NCBI RefSeq assembly: GCF_006345805.1
Contig: NW_021835471.1
Span: 1 to 64,000 of the forward strand
Direction: 5' to 3'
Source of the DNA: Octopus sinensis
Taxonomy: Eukaryota
DNA: 64,000 bases
The translations under genes were made by a program, and so were the position numbers. Shown one piece after another: positions 29,482 through 53,792 of the stretch (its first letter is position 1; each line of letters begins with the position of its first letter). The notes under the pieces were generated by a model. The model was not told the DNA's origin. It saw only the letters and a list, made by a program, of their open reading frames with translations, and did not search any database.

Positions 29482-29693
29482 TTATGTCTTTGGTGGTCTA
29501 TATATAACATTCCTATGTCTCCAGTGTTCTATACAAGATGTGTAGTAGGTGACAAAAGTTTCCCTCATGTTGCAAGGGTTGTATCTGTATATGAAGAAGC
29601 AGATTATGAGAAGGATGACTACAAATCCAAGTAGGGAAAGGATAACAACAGCATAGACTGGTATGCGGGGTCTTGGTCCATTAGTTGTTTCAT
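29482..29693 (-). CDS. Ig receptor TM + cytoplasmic terminal exon: DETTNGPRPRIPVYAVVILSLLGFVVILLIICFFIYRYNPCNMRETFVTYYTSCIEHWRHRNVIYRPPKT*
   Basis: tttatcttttgcag acceptor, phase 1 matches the domain-3 donor; ~24-residue hydrophobic helix followed by R; TAA at 29482-29484. Confidence 0.85.
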
Positions 29694-29757
29694 CTGCAAA
29701 AGATAAACAATGAAACATGTACCTTTCGTTTTTTTAATAAAAGACAGATTTCTTTAT

Positions 29758-30862
29758 TAACCCTTTCGTTACTGTATTTATTTTGAGACACTCTGTGTTT
29801 CTTTCAATTACTTTAAATATAACAAAGAATTTAGTAAAATAACTTAGTTATCATTAAGCTAGTGTTAGGAACATAAATTGTGACTAAGGTTTGGTGGAAG
29901 ATTTTAATTCAGAACTTATGAAAACAAGACATTTGTACTCAGAGCCAGAGGTGGTTTCAGCCGGGTTGGTATCAAAAGGGTTAAGAATTGTTTCTCTATT
30001 ATATAATTTAACCCTTTTGTTACCATATTTCTGTTGAGATGCTCTGTGTTTCTTTCAATTACTTTAAATATAACAAAGAATTTAGTAAAATAACTTGGTT
30101 ATCATTAAGCTAGTGTTAGGAACATAAATTGTGACTAAGGTTTGGTGGAAGATTTTAATTCAGAACTTATGAAAACAAGACATTTGTACTCAGAGCCAGA
30201 GGTGGTTTCAGCCGGGTTGGTATCAAAAGGGTTAAGAATTGTTTCTCTATTATATAATTTAACCCTTTTGTTACCATATTTCTGTTGAGATGCTCTGTGT
30301 TTCTTTCAATTACTTTAAATATAACAAAGAATTTAGTAAAATAACTTGGTTATCATTAAGCTAGTGTTAGGAACATAAATTGTGACTAAGGTTTGGTGGA
30401 AGATTTTAATTCAGAACTTATGAAAACAAGACATTTGTATTACAGAGCCAAAGGTGGTTTCAGCCGGGTTGGTATCAAAAGGGTTAAGAATTGTTTCTCT
30501 ATTATATAATTTAACCCTTTTGTTACCATATTTCTGTTGAGATGCTCTGTGTTTCTTTCAATTAATTTTAAATATAACAAAGAATTTAGTAAAATAACTT
30601 AGTTACCATTAAGCTAGTGTTAGGAACATAAATTGTGACTAAGGTTTGGTGGAAGATTTTAATTCAGAACTTATGAAAACAAGACATTTGTACCACAGAG
30701 CCAAAGGTGGTTTCAGCCGGGTTGGTATCAAAAGGGTTAAGAATTGTTTCTCTATTATATAATTTAACCCTTTCGTTACCATATTTCTGTTGAGATGCTC
30801 TGTGTTTCTTTCAATTACTTTAAATATAACAAAGAATTTAGTAAAATAACTTAGTTATCATT
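29758..30862. mobile_element. Tandem array (~251-bp period, ~4.4 units) of a TTAA-flanked piggyBac-like MITE
   Basis: Units begin ttaaCCCTTTTGTTACCA and end TGGTATCAAAAGGGttaa; starts at ~29758, 30008, 30259, 30511 and 30764. Confidence 0.8.
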
Positions 30863-30864
30863 CA

Positions 30865-31950
30865 GATCGTCGGCTGCGGGGTCACTCCGAAAAGCTCTAT
30901 CTACGACGATTTCATCTCAATCGAAGGAGAGGGGCTTTCTCCGTCCGGGTTGCGGATCCGTGGAATAAGCTGCCAGACGAGATAGTGAAGATGCCGACGA
31001 CCGCTCAGTTCAAAGTCTCCCTTGACCAGAAATGGTCTGAACTCTTTGCATGAACACCCTCCCTGTACATAACTCCATGTCCCCTTACATGGCCTTGCTT
31101 TTGCTTTTTGAGCCAATAAAAATTGAATTGAATATATATATATATATATATATACATATATATATAAAGCTCTATCTACGACGATTTCATCTCAATTGAA
31201 GGAGAGGGGCTTTCTCCGTCTGGGTTGCGGATCCGTGGCATAAGCTGCTGGACGAGATAGTGAAGATGCCGACGACCGCTCAGTTCAAAGTCTCCCTTGA
31301 CCAGAAATGGTCTGAACTCTTTGCATGAACACCCTCCCTGTACATAACTCCATGTCCCCCTACATGACCTTGCTTTTGCTTTTTGAGCCAATAAAAATTG
31401 AATTGAATATATATATATATATATATATACATATATATATAAAGCTCTATCTACGACGATTTCATCTCAATTGAAGGAGAGGGGCTTTCTCCGTCTGGGT
31501 TGCGGATCCGTGGCATAAGCTGCTGGACGAGATAGTGAAGATGCCGACGACCGCTCGGTTCAAGGTCTCTCTAGACCAGAAATGGCCTGAACTCTTTGCA
31601 TGAACACCCTCCTTGTACATAACTCCATGTCCCCCTACATGGCCTTGCTTTTGCTTTTTGAGCCAATAAAAATTGAATTGAATTGAATTGAATATATATA
31701 TAAAGCTCTATCTGCAACGATTTCATCTCAATCAAAGGAGAGGGGCTTTCTCCGTCCGGGTTGCGGATCCATGGCATAAGCTGCCGGACGAGATAGTGAA
31801 GATGCTGACGACCGCTCGGTTCAAAGTCTCTCTTGACCAGAAATGGCCTGAACTCTTTGCATGAACACCCTCCCTGTACATAACTCCATGTCCCCCTACA
31901 TGACCTTGCTTTTTGCTTTTTGAGCCCAAAAATTAACTTAACTTAATTTA
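30865..31950 (+). mobile_element. Four head-to-tail copies (~270 bp) of the CR1 3' end
   Basis: Each unit aagctctatct...gagcc encodes KLYLRRFHLNRRRGAFSVRVADPW; separated by (AATTG)n/(AT)n. Confidence 0.88.
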
Positions 31951-32069
31951 GCTAGTCTTACGAATATAATATAAGTGGGACATGGAGAGATTCCCATTTG
32001 GTGTATGCAGCAGAATGTATGAAACATGCTTGATTTATGTTGGTTGTCCAACAGAACAATTAAACAAAA

Positions 32070-51482: not shown

Positions 51483-51782
51483 CTTAACGGGGACTGGTCT
51501 TCCCTGCACCGAAAGCTTCATGGAGCACAAGTCCAGCTGACAAGCCATCGACGCTGAATAATCCAATCGCAAAATACACTGATCTTCCATCTCCACCACA
51601 TAGACAGGAAGCATGACTTCTAGTCCGGCAACATCAATCCAGAGATTAACCGGTCCTCACAGCTCAGTACAATGCCCGGTAACACTACACAACTGCTGCA
51701 ATGACTCTGGCAGGTCTAGATGCCGCAACACATTGGGCACCACAAAGGTTTGTCCCAAGGCTGAATCAATCACAAGAGAACA
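51483..51782 (-). mobile_element. Degenerate Ty3/Gypsy-like aspartic protease fragment
   Basis: CSLVIDSALGQTFV...*...LPVYVVEMEDQCILRLDY: retropepsin-like IDS(G) and CILG(L)D motifs, both degenerate, with one stop. Confidence 0.55.
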
Positions 51783-52764
51783 TGTCCAGGCTATAGTAGA
51801 AGACACTTGCCCAAGATGCCACGCAGTGGGACTGAACCCGGAACCATGTGGTTGGTAAGCAAGCTACTTACCACACAGCCACTCCAACACCTATAATATA
51901 TATGACGTAGCCAGTAGGGCCAACAACAACAACGAAAATAACACACACAAAACGTTGCTTAGTCAAAGTAATTTTTTTTTTTGTTAACAAAGCAGGAGTG
52001 GCTGTGTGGTAAGTAGCTTGCTAACCAACCACATGGTTGCAGGTTCAGTCCCAGTGCGTGGCATCTTGGGCAAGTGTCTTCTGCTATAGCCCCAGGCCGA
52101 CCAATGCCTTGTGAGTGGATTTGGTAGACGGAAACTGAAAGAAGCCCGTCATATATATTATAGGTGTTGAGTGGCTGTGTGGTAAGTAACTTGCTTACGA
52201 ACCACATGGTTCCGGGTTCAGTCCCACTGCATGGCACCTTGGGCAAGTGTCTTCTACTATAGCCTCGGGCCGACCAAAGCCTTGTGAGTGGATTTGGTAG
52301 ACGGAAACTGAAAGAAGCCCGTCGTATATATGTATATATATATATATATATGTGTGTGTGTGTGTGTATATGTTTGTGTGTCTGAGTTTGTCCCCCCACC
52401 CAACATCGCTTGACAACCAATGCTGGTGTGTTTACATCCCCATAACTTAGCGGTTCAGCAAAAGAGACCGATAGAATAAGTACTAGGCTTACAAAGAATA
52501 AGTCCTGGGGTCAATTTGCTTGACGAAAGGCGGTGCTCCAGCATGGCCACAGTCAAATCACTGAAACAAGTAAAATTTTTTTTAAATAGTAACACAGTCC
52601 CTTTTCTTCTTTCTTTTCTTTTTTCTTTTCCTTTCTTTTAAAGAAACACATTTAACAGCAAAGTTCTTTTTCTTTTTCTTCTTTTCTTTTCAAACATTTA
52701 ACGTTACAAAGTTTTCTTTTTTTTTAAACATTTAACAACAAAAAGTTTGTTTCCCTTTAAAACA

Positions 52765-53630
52765 TAAATCTGATCTGGCAGAGTTTCTACAGCTGGATGC
52801 CCTTCCAAACGCCAACCACTCCGAGAGTGTAGTGGGTGCTTTTACATGCCACCGGCACGAGGGCCAGTCTGGCGGTACTGACAACGGCCACGCTCGAAAT
52901 GGTGCTTTTTTATGTGCCACCTGCACAGGAGTCAGTCCAGCGGCACTGGCAACGACCTCACTCAAATGTTTTGTTCATGTGCCAGTAAGGTGACGCTGGT
53001 AACGATCACGCTCAAATGGTGCTATTTTTCGTGCCCACCGGCACGGAAGCCAGACAGCTGCTCTGGCAGTGGTCCCGCTCGGATGGAGCTGTTAGCGCTC
53101 CACTGGCCCGGGTGCCAATCATCGAATTTGGTTCATCAGCATCATCATCATCATCATTATTTAGCGTCCACTTTCCATGCCAGCATGGGTTGGACGGTTC
53201 AACTGGGGTCTGGGAAGCCAGAAGGCTGCACCAGGCCCCAGTCTGATCTGGCAGTGTTTCTACGGCTGGATGCCCTTCCTAACGCCAACCACTTCGTGAG
53301 TGTTGTGGGTGCTTATTAGGTGACACTGGCACAGGTGCCACACGAGGCTGGCAAACGGCCACGATCAGATGGTACTTTTTACGTGCCACCGGCACGGAGG
53401 CCAGGTGAGGCTGGCAAACAGCCACGATCGGATGGTGCTTTTACATGCCACCGGCACGGAGGCCAGGTGAGGCTGGCAACTGCCATGATCAGATGGTGCT
53501 TTTTACGTGCCACCGGCACATAGGCCAGTCGGGGCAGCGCTGGCAACGGCCACGTTTGGACGGTTCTCTTACGTGCCACCGGCACTGGATTCACAACTAC
53601 AAATTCCATTGATGTTGATCGATTTTGATT
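52765..53630 (-). mobile_element. RTE 3' UTR/tail copies (two adjacent)
   Basis: Same diagnostic 3' UTR motifs; further copies at 54110-54450 and 55645-55940 (minus) and 57288-57805 (plus). Confidence 0.75.
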
Positions 53631-53690
53631 TTGATTTTGATTTGTTGTTAATGAAAAAAAATTTAAAAACAAAAATGAAAGTAAACTTAC

Positions 53691-53730
53691 AAAAACACAA
53701 TGCAAACACACAGAACTGTAGAATGTCCAT
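53691..53730 (-). CDS. Ig-domain membrane receptor, leader exon: MDILQFCVFALCF (+1 nt)
   Basis: Minus strand reads tttttttttacag|ATC ATG GAC ATT CTA CAG TTC TGT GTG TTT GCA TTG TGT TTT T|gtaagt. Exon is 53691-53733, so an upstream non-coding exon is implied. Joined to the next exon it gives the signal peptide MDILQFCVFALCFCLMKA. Confidence 0.8.
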
Positions 53731-53792
53731 GATCTGTAAAAAAAAATTTACAAATTAAGAGATGACTACCAGAGCATGACAGATATGAGAAA

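Follow-up and report, generated by a model that had tools for sequence, protein, structure and literature searches.

A three-immunoglobulin-domain membrane protein gene of Octopus sinensis and its apparently undescribed octopod family

The gene LOC115231260 and its exons

We analyzed a 64,000-nt stretch of the Octopus sinensis genome (NCBI RefSeq assembly GCF_006345805.1, contig NW_021835471.1, positions 1 to 64,000; hereafter the window), whose minus strand carries LOC115231260, an intact gene for a type I membrane glycoprotein with three immunoglobulin (Ig) domains. We regard this identity and architecture as nearly certain. The coding sequence has eight exons with AG/GT borders, all in phase 1, arranged as a leader of 40 nt, three pairs of 39 and 249 nt, and a transmembrane and tail exon of 212 nt, and each of them was found where the original prediction, made from the sequence alone, had placed it. 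Joined, these exons give 1116 nt (371 codons and a stop), the lengths expected earlier; the proposed removal of one A proved unnecessary, as the raw sequence is already open and in frame. The translation equals RefSeq XP_029657181.1 ("uncharacterized protein LOC115231260 isoform X2", Octopus sinensis) over all 371 residues, and therefore the NCBI automatic annotation independently arrived at the same eight-exon coding sequence. This entry carries no function, domain description or literature, and it sits in the 90%-identity cluster of the best database match. Window bases 19482-64000 agree with scaffold VCDQ01005279.1 (assembly GCA_006345805.1) at the same coordinates with 0 mismatches. The coding exons are as follows, in the order of transcription:

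62835-62921, minus strand: alternative 5' coding exon of isoform X1, 87 nt, adding 29 residues before MDILQ and lying outside the range first proposed
53691-53730, minus strand: coding part of the leader exon, 40 nt, the ATG (at 53730) plus 37 nt, encoding MDILQFCVFALCF, the hydrophobic core of the signal peptide
49327-49365, minus strand: mini-exon 1, 39 nt, phase 1, covering the last signal-peptide residues (..LMKA, the predicted cleavage site) and the domain 1 A strand (RLYKIFQT)
47317-47565, minus strand: main exon of domain 1, 249 nt, phase 1-1, with C52, C59 and C63 and the sequons N34 and N76
45925-45963, minus strand: mini-exon 2, 39 nt, linker and A strand of domain 2 (PTKVEAYEIIQN)
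39769-40017, minus strand: main exon of domain 2, 249 nt, with C155 and C159; the positions of the optional cysteine pair are Y148 and R185
37526-37564, minus strand: mini-exon 3, 39 nt, linker and A strand of domain 3 (STRTEIYKITQN)
34589-34837, minus strand: main exon of domain 3, 249 nt, with C251 and C255, and C287/C292 in FCDLYLC; it carries the Pfam I-set match
29482-29693, minus strand: last exon, 212 nt, stalk, transmembrane helix and 34-residue cytoplasmic tail, with TAA at 29482-29484

Internal exon borders follow one pattern throughout, (Y)nCAG before the exon and GTAAG or GTAAA after it. The leader exon reads ATGGACATT...TTTT followed by gtaagt, and the 249-nt domain exons are flanked by tttcag and gtaag. 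The mini-exons, preceded by a polypyrimidine tract and CAG and followed by GTAAAT, were the only mutually homologous candidates in an exhaustive AG-39nt-GT scan of the introns; mini-exon 1, homologous to mini-exons 2 and 3, was the sole candidate with both a polypyrimidine tract and a GTAAAT donor. The last exon is homologous to the transmembrane exons of three paralogues (P0004, P0006 and P0010). A tblastn search with the three domains and 26 family proteins turned up no other exons of the family, and no alternative terminal ones, within the window.

The range 29482-53733 given in the original prediction holds for these eight exons and falls short as the extent of the gene, since the 5' exon of RefSeq isoform X1 lies at 62835-62921; in record VCDQ01005279.1 the gene accordingly spans 29482-62921. 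The N-terminus of isoform X1 matched the window at 28 of 29 residues (tblastn), with a GT donor directly after the exon, which is spliced to a CAG acceptor three bases upstream of the leader ATG. A further isoform, X3, starts at Met44. On the opposite strand, a gene at 59180-64000 (plus strand, continuing to record position 72013), annotated in the source with a 104-residue ankyrin-repeat product, overlaps the first intron and the 5' exon of isoform X1.

Fold and cysteine arrangement of the three domains

The protein consists of a signal peptide, three tandem Ig-like domains of 95 residues, a short stalk, one transmembrane helix and a 34-residue tail, and there are seven N-x-S/T sequons in its ectodomain. 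Compared in pairs, the three domains are 47-50% identical, far beyond chance (tblastn E 1e-19 to 1e-27 inside the window), and their alignment is free of gaps. As had been read from the sequence, all three share the C-strand Trp, the motif L(W/L)IR(K/N)VTK and a YECDxxC motif (YECDNVC, YECDRTC and YECDMTC, respectively), and all lack the B-strand Cys. The family consensus N-terminus is MDILKFF, and AlphaFold2 places a helix at residues 2-14. Given that family N-termini run MDIL.F... and then ..L(T/S)xA ahead of xYKI, signal-peptide cleavage after LMKA18 is suggested. The transmembrane stretch (about 312-337) contains no D, E, K or R, and C333 lies inside it. The tail (338-371) has four Tyr and Cys at positions 342 and 355, and a regular-expression motif scan found in it no immunoreceptor tyrosine-based inhibitory (ITIM), switch (ITSM) or activation (ITAM) motif and no NPxY or PDZ motif. 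The scan thus agrees with the earlier description of a tail with four Tyr, juxtamembrane Cys (C333 and C342) and no canonical ITIM.

The fold of the three domains is that of an Ig domain, as judged from sequence profiles and structure models. With the whole protein as query, the Pfam I-set model scored 37.8 bits against a gathering score of 23.7, over residues 214-288 (domain 3), while domains 1 and 2 searched singly against Pfam gave no match. Among single family domains, 7 of 35 reached E ≤ 1 in Pfam; the V-set model was touched by one of the 35, at E = 0.087, and the LOC115231260 protein had no V-set or C2-set match. The AlphaFold2 model of the full-length protein, built on a family alignment, has three beta sandwiches with core predicted local distance difference test (pLDDT) values of 82-95 and a transmembrane helix at 314-338. 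In Foldseek searches of the PDB, this model matched titin Ig tandems at 5e-11, and DIP-alpha Ig1-3, OPCML/IgLON5 and NCAM Ig1-3 at 1e-6 to 3e-8. Domain 1 modeled on an alignment of 35 domains had eight strands, with pLDDT 89.1 and a predicted template modeling score of 0.81, and its top 50 PDB matches were all Ig domains, with template modeling (TM) scores of 0.5-0.68 (titin I27, 0.66/0.68). No sequence relative with a solved structure was found, the best being titin at E = 0.3.

Which kind of Ig domain this represents is less sharply drawn. Antibody VL and CD8 (V-set) were mixed with titin and obscurin (I-set) at similar scores among the Foldseek matches of domain 1. I-set was the best Pfam model and the domains are 95 residues long; I-set is, tentatively, the best subtype label, and the domains look more like I-set than like the V type of CD2 and CEACAM. 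The structural check proposed at the outset, for a V-set fold, thus returned a predicted Ig fold in which V-set was not singled out. The canonical disulfide between strands B and F is absent: a B-strand Cys occurred in 0 of 52 family domains, and strand F has F or W.F where Y.C would stand. The domains keep the rest of the Ig core, with an invariant C-strand Trp and L.I..V on strand E. Loss of the B-F disulfide is tolerated among recognized members of the immunoglobulin superfamily (IgSF), and its absence therefore does not exclude membership. The YECDxxC proteins, named here after their shared motif, are IgSF surface proteins; they belong to a well-known kind and form no new category.

Cysteines were counted in 60 domains (52 unique) from 26 family proteins aligned to one hidden Markov model, whose column numbers are used for C38 to C86 below. 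C45 was present in 52 of 52 and C49 in 51 of 52 unique domains (YEC..xxC, at the end of strand C' and in the next loop). C38 (WxC, end of strand C) and C75 (KEC, EF turn) occurred together in 25 domains and were both absent from 21, with C38 alone in four and C75 alone in one. C81 and C86 (FCDxxxC) were both present in eight domains, both absent from 41, and C81 stood alone in two; the complete pair co-occurs in eight membrane-proximal domains and in no other domain type. In domain 3 of the LOC115231260 protein this pair is C287/C292, with four residues between, in FCDLYLC, matching the F-strand Cys and partner that had been noted before.

From this conservation and co-occurrence we infer a replacement disulfide scheme. 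The invariant CxxxC of YECDxxC would form a local staple at the end of strand C'; an optional bond may run from WxC, where strand C ends, to KEC in the EF turn, a pair that domains 2 and 3 lack altogether and of which domain 1 keeps one half; and CxxxxC would staple the FG hairpin in membrane-proximal domains. A bond between C38 and C75 would be geometrically reasonable because the start of strand F neighbors the end of strand C in the Ig sheet. The half-present pair would leave Cys52 of domain 1 free, which is the third, unpaired Cys of the original prediction. The four domains with C38 alone are domain 1 of the LOC115231260 protein, of LOC115227428 and of two O. bimaculoides proteins. Given that this state falls in domain 1 of related proteins, Cys52 is best explained as the surviving half of the family's C38-C75 pair, apparently kept in two species after its partner was lost. 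It could also be a putative site of covalent pairing or dimerization.

Comparison with characterized proteins places these domains among familiar folds and apart from any named family. The I-set domains of titin and obscurin are the best fold matches (titin I27 and obscurin Ig32 had TM scores of 0.63-0.68 for domain 1), and many of them also have no disulfide. However, these are intracellular muscle proteins without signal peptide, transmembrane helix, glycosylation or YECDxxC, and no significant sequence match links them to the octopus protein. DIPs, IgLONs (OPCML, IgLON5 and NEGR1) and NCAM Ig1-3 resemble it in their three-domain I-set surface ectodomain with little or no cytoplasmic signaling part, and DIP/Dpr are lineage-expanded recognition families too. 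In contrast to the octopus protein, which has a transmembrane anchor, no glycosylphosphatidylinositol (GPI) signal and no canonical disulfide, these proteins keep the B-F disulfide and are GPI-anchored or carry fibronectin type III (FN3) domains. Sequence and profile searches detected no relation to IgLON, DIP/Dpr or NCAM, so the likeness is at the level of the fold only.

CD2/CD58/SLAM and CEACAM proteins serve adhesion and recognition at the cell surface with an N-terminal Ig domain that is free of the canonical disulfide, and the original prediction had likened the octopus domains to this V type. That likeness was not borne out. The domains score as I-set, similar to those of titin, obscurin, DIPs and IgLONs, and all three are of one type, while in CD2 and CEACAM a V-set domain is followed by disulfide-bonded C2 domains. 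We rejected membership in the CD2/CEACAM group on the grounds of the three same-type domains and the lack of a V-set or C2-set Pfam match, and keep it as a functional analogy only; no CD2/SLAM or CEACAM proteins were among the sequence matches. A KIR/LILR/Siglec-type receptor was likewise set aside, given the tail without ITIM, ITSM or ITAM and the transmembrane helix without a charged residue.

An octopod family with near-identical copies

A search of 5.8 billion proteins with the LOC115231260 protein returned only Octopus proteins, all named "uncharacterized" or "hypothetical", with E values of 1e-195 to 1e-11 for family members. We define the YECDxxC family here, outside any curated resource, by a 95-residue domain with W36, C45 and C49, the pattern L.I..V..(x)..W.F, a leader of the MDIL.F type and a C-terminal transmembrane anchor; all three domains of the LOC115231260 protein carry every invariant residue. 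The domain profile gave 56 matches at E ≤ 1e-3 among 1.84 billion representative proteins. The 20 short matches examined came from O. sinensis, O. vulgaris, O. bimaculoides and octopus read sets, with two from Argonauta hians and one from Haliotis rufescens, while two examined matches of several thousand residues were vertebrate obscurins, matching at many stretches as generic I-set tandems. No decapodiform or Nautilus matches appeared in the profile search, in a library where the completeness of those proteomes is uncertain. As judged from these searches, the family is restricted to octopods, in line with the expectation of a lineage-specific family, and no characterized orthologue was found.

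The abalone match, Haliotis rufescens LOC124119024 (XP_048257965.1), resembles the octopus proteins in its five tandem, transmembrane-anchored Ig-like domains of about 100 residues, with TCNPSC, STLTIHSV and TW.I.D.N motifs, a CxxxC at the same position and W in place of Y.C on strand F. Unlike the octopus domains, its domains have additional Cys at their ends, and the family it belongs to, with members named "uncharacterized" or "mucin-like", is confined to abalones. The similarity between the Haliotis and octopus domains is remote (hhalign probability 80% over 51 columns), and common ancestry is possible.

The family occupies at least 18 distinct loci in O. sinensis, many of them on one 21.3-Mb scaffold, and at least 12 in O. 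bimaculoides, and it is partly tandemly clustered. Its proteins have one to five domains, and LOC115225115 has at least 18 RefSeq isoforms. The paralogues compared (LOC115225115/115225116 of O. sinensis, LOC106882146/106867739 of O. bimaculoides and GAB1602345.1 of Argonauta hians, all "uncharacterized" or "hypothetical") share the 95-residue domain, W36/C45/C49, the leader, the transmembrane anchor and, where checked, the phase-1 exon pairs of 39 and 249 nt; unlike in the LOC115231260 protein, most of their domains have a complete C38-C75 pair, and their tails are unrelated. Proteins of a sub-branch that includes Argonauta (P0019-P0025, P0035, P0047 and P0049) carry one YECDRTC domain and, after it, a Cys-rich domain of another kind, about 90 residues long (C.Y.V.A.CSLP.T.I.C…C.DG.T), after which some members have one or several transmembrane segments.

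Transcription of a one-domain paralogue was found in run SRR3401912, an octopus metatranscriptome (PMC11662614), where a 1067-nt Logan contig holds leader, mini-exon, domain exon and transmembrane segment contiguously. Given that family introns are kilobases long, this contig represents spliced mRNA, and it supports the exon logic of the family. With an Ig fold predicted, no characterized orthologue found and a spliced transcript of a paralogue at hand, none of the outcomes named in advance as contradicting the original prediction was seen. In the window, each 249-nt domain exon runs into gtaag(g/t)(a/g)aa… and then a long (AAT/ATT)n microsatellite (34241-34588, 39372-39768 and 47060-47316), where read-through of the donor yields short "GKEMIYNNNN" or "KGK*" ends. 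Several database entries of the family have C-termini of this read-through kind, e.g., …GKEITSANNNNNNSF, and might represent secreted isoforms or artefacts of annotation.

Two further O. sinensis loci closely resemble LOC115231260. LOC115228031, on a small unplaced scaffold, differs at six of 371 residues. LOC115227428 (locus L001 on VCDQ01005386.1) is 85% identical overall, with exon architecture identical to that of the gene in the window and colinear with it; its differences fall unevenly over the 249-nt exons, with four in that of domain 1, one in that of domain 3 and 26 in that of domain 2. The O. vulgaris counterpart, CAI9743524.1, is 371 residues long with the same ends and differs at 14 residues, seven of which lie within residues 163-198 of domain 2 and all match the LOC115227428 state. 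This mosaic of domain 2 suggests exon-scale conversion or old polymorphism. The three O. sinensis genes lie on separate small scaffolds and are near-identical in domains 1 and 3 and not in domain 2, with LOC115227428 also differing in the leader and transmembrane exons, while the O. vulgaris orthologue carries the "other" variant of domain 2. They could be haplotigs, recent paralogues or products of gene conversion.

These copies raise the question of whether LOC115231260 arose by recent duplication and is redundant, with hardly any function if any, or is a haplotig of one gene in the assembly; its open reading frame would then be intact and its locus would add nothing distinct. The near-identical genes on other small unplaced scaffolds fit such an account, as do the repeat density of the locus, the reshaping of the C-terminal codons beside a repeat insertion, and a ratio of nonsynonymous to synonymous substitution rates (dN/dS) against LOC115227428 of 0.61 overall, not clearly constrained and based on only 46 changes, too few to interpret. 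However, all eight exons are open and all splice sites canonical, O. vulgaris has the 371-residue counterpart with the same ends, and an orthologue-like gene of O. bimaculoides shares the Cys pattern of each domain, down to the free Cys of domain 1. We consider a redundant duplicate or haplotig improbable.

Repeats of several kinds accompany the gene. About 700 bp downstream of the stop codon lies a 14.7-kb satellite (14044-28764; 106-bp unit, about 139 copies, 96% matches, GC 0.26, with a strong GC skew of +0.31), and in the last intron, just upstream of the transmembrane exon, two tandem arrays occupy 29757-30862 and 30891-31926 (251-bp unit x 4.4 and 275-bp unit x 3.8), the 275-bp unit recurring elsewhere in the window and in L001. 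An interspersed repeat of about 390 bp (region 29078-29510) begins 20 nt past the stop codon, has other copies near 41594-42204 and 45009-45399, and lies between the two copies of a roughly 34-nt duplication, tatagaacac(t/c)ggagacata..aatgttatat; without this insertion and a local 27-nt duplication, the reading frame would continue into a different tail. The label "tRNA-derived SINE" (short interspersed nuclear element) for this repeat is no more than an impression from box-like motifs, as ARAGORN on the repeat and Rfam over the whole window each returned 0 matches. A fragment of a common SINE-like repeat (…gggactgaacccagaaccatgtggttggaaagcaaacttcttacc) ends 17 nt before the acceptors of the domain 1 and domain 2 exons and not of the domain 3 exon (window 47566-47640 and 40018-40095), with the same pattern in the O. 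sinensis paralogue (L001 20640-20710 and 24377-24511), so that it either predates the duplication of domains 1 and 2 or was acquired twice. Recognized by eye only, a segment in intron 1 (50657-50887, minus strand, …HPPYSPDIAPSDFHLF…) is presumably the C-terminus of a mariner-type transposase, and we take open reading frame pieces at 2396-2854 (plus strand), 7021-7464 (minus strand) and 12754-13191 (plus strand), with …LYGSETWTLSK…, to be reverse-transcriptase-like.

Possible mode of action and meaning for octopods

The reading that we moderately favor, from sequence and predicted structure, is that the protein acts in surface adhesion or recognition by ectodomain binding, without signaling motifs of its own. 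A glycosylated three-domain rod would be displayed on the cell surface, where its ectodomain may bind a partner in trans or in cis, most probably through domain 1. Given that the tail is free of ITIM, ITSM, ITAM, NPxY and PDZ motifs and that the transmembrane helix is uncharged, the protein would not be a signaling receptor in its own right; it would be a module for adhesion or recognition, or contribute the ligand-binding half of a complex. The original prediction, too, had proposed a recognition receptor only by inference.

The same architecture, with few Ig domains, one transmembrane helix and a very short motif-free tail, would also suit an auxiliary subunit or chaperone of a transporter or channel that works in cis with a multi-pass protein, in the style of basigin, neuroplastin and embigin or of sodium-channel beta subunits, and neuroplastin in the PMCA complex was among the Foldseek matches, at rank 18. 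However, this match reflects a generic Ig tandem, the transmembrane helix lacks the conserved charged residue used for pairing in basigin-family proteins, and such subunits typically come from conserved genes in single copy, unlike an expanding family limited to octopods. We thus regard an auxiliary subunit as very improbable.

In a further rival account, the family would be diversified octopod sensors of pathogens or non-self on haemocytes or epithelia, signaling via a partner chain. The family is lineage-restricted, multi-copy and partly tandemly clustered, with variable domain number and many isoforms, and its domain 2 is mosaic between copies and species, presumably by conversion or old polymorphism; lineage restriction, multiple copies and mosaicism are typical of immune IgSF families such as KIR/LILR, CEACAM and the FREPs of snails. 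Against this immune function stand the tail without ITIM, ITSM or ITAM and the transmembrane helix without a charged residue for an adaptor. Far from being the most variable parts of the family, the loops at the end corresponding to the complementarity-determining regions rank with its best conserved. In the supplements of a skin-mucus proteome paper on O. vulgaris, none of five family accessions was present. We consider an innate immune receptor rather unlikely.

Several points weigh against the favored reading of adhesion or recognition as well. The RefSeq model of LOC115231260 is itself a prediction, and a literature search with 24 family locus names and accessions and by topic found no paper on the family. 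Co-occurrence and conservation, not S-S distances, are the basis of the proposed disulfide pairings, and the dN/dS value given above offers no interpretable sign of selection. The most conserved blocks, PNMKRPVVW and NYKYECDRTC, are common to all paralogues, which argues against those loops as a variable ligand-binding site. Finally, the last eight codons and the stop codon sit in the 27-nt local duplication adjoining the interspersed repeat of about 390 bp, and therefore the extreme C-terminus is evolutionarily young.

Phase 1-1 exons, variable domain number, many RefSeq isoforms and the mosaic domain 2 together suggest that the family diversifies by exon duplication, skipping and conversion. 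Taken further, the YECDxxC proteins might be an octopod-invented combinatorial system of surface identity or recognition, in which phase-1 Ig exons with a novel disulfide scheme would be duplicated, skipped and converted between clustered paralogues to yield a repertoire. Such a system would be comparable in logic to the octopus protocadherin expansion, to DIP/Dpr and to immune IgSF families, and possible uses would include neuronal or sucker wiring, self/non-self recognition of arms, and host-symbiont or host-parasite recognition. We offer this idea tentatively and think it doubtful.

The gene appeared undescribed at the outset; its model is already public in RefSeq as the "uncharacterized protein" LOC115231260, while no characterized relative or paper was found, so that the family and its domain variant appear to be undescribed. 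Interest in the locus is limited by the existing model and by the fact that lineage-specific IgSF expansions are common in invertebrates. The domain would nevertheless be a natural example of an Ig fold re-stabilized in a different way, which is relevant for protein engineers. Nervous and sensory complexity in cephalopods has arisen largely via lineage-specific expansions, namely of protocadherins, zinc fingers, G-protein-coupled receptors and chemotactile receptors. LOC115231260 points to another, so far unremarked octopod expansion, of small membrane proteins whose repeated unit is a divergent Ig module in which local staples would replace the B-F disulfide. If a recognition role is true, whether between cells or between host and microbe, these proteins would be a new and tractable entry to octopus immunity or wiring.

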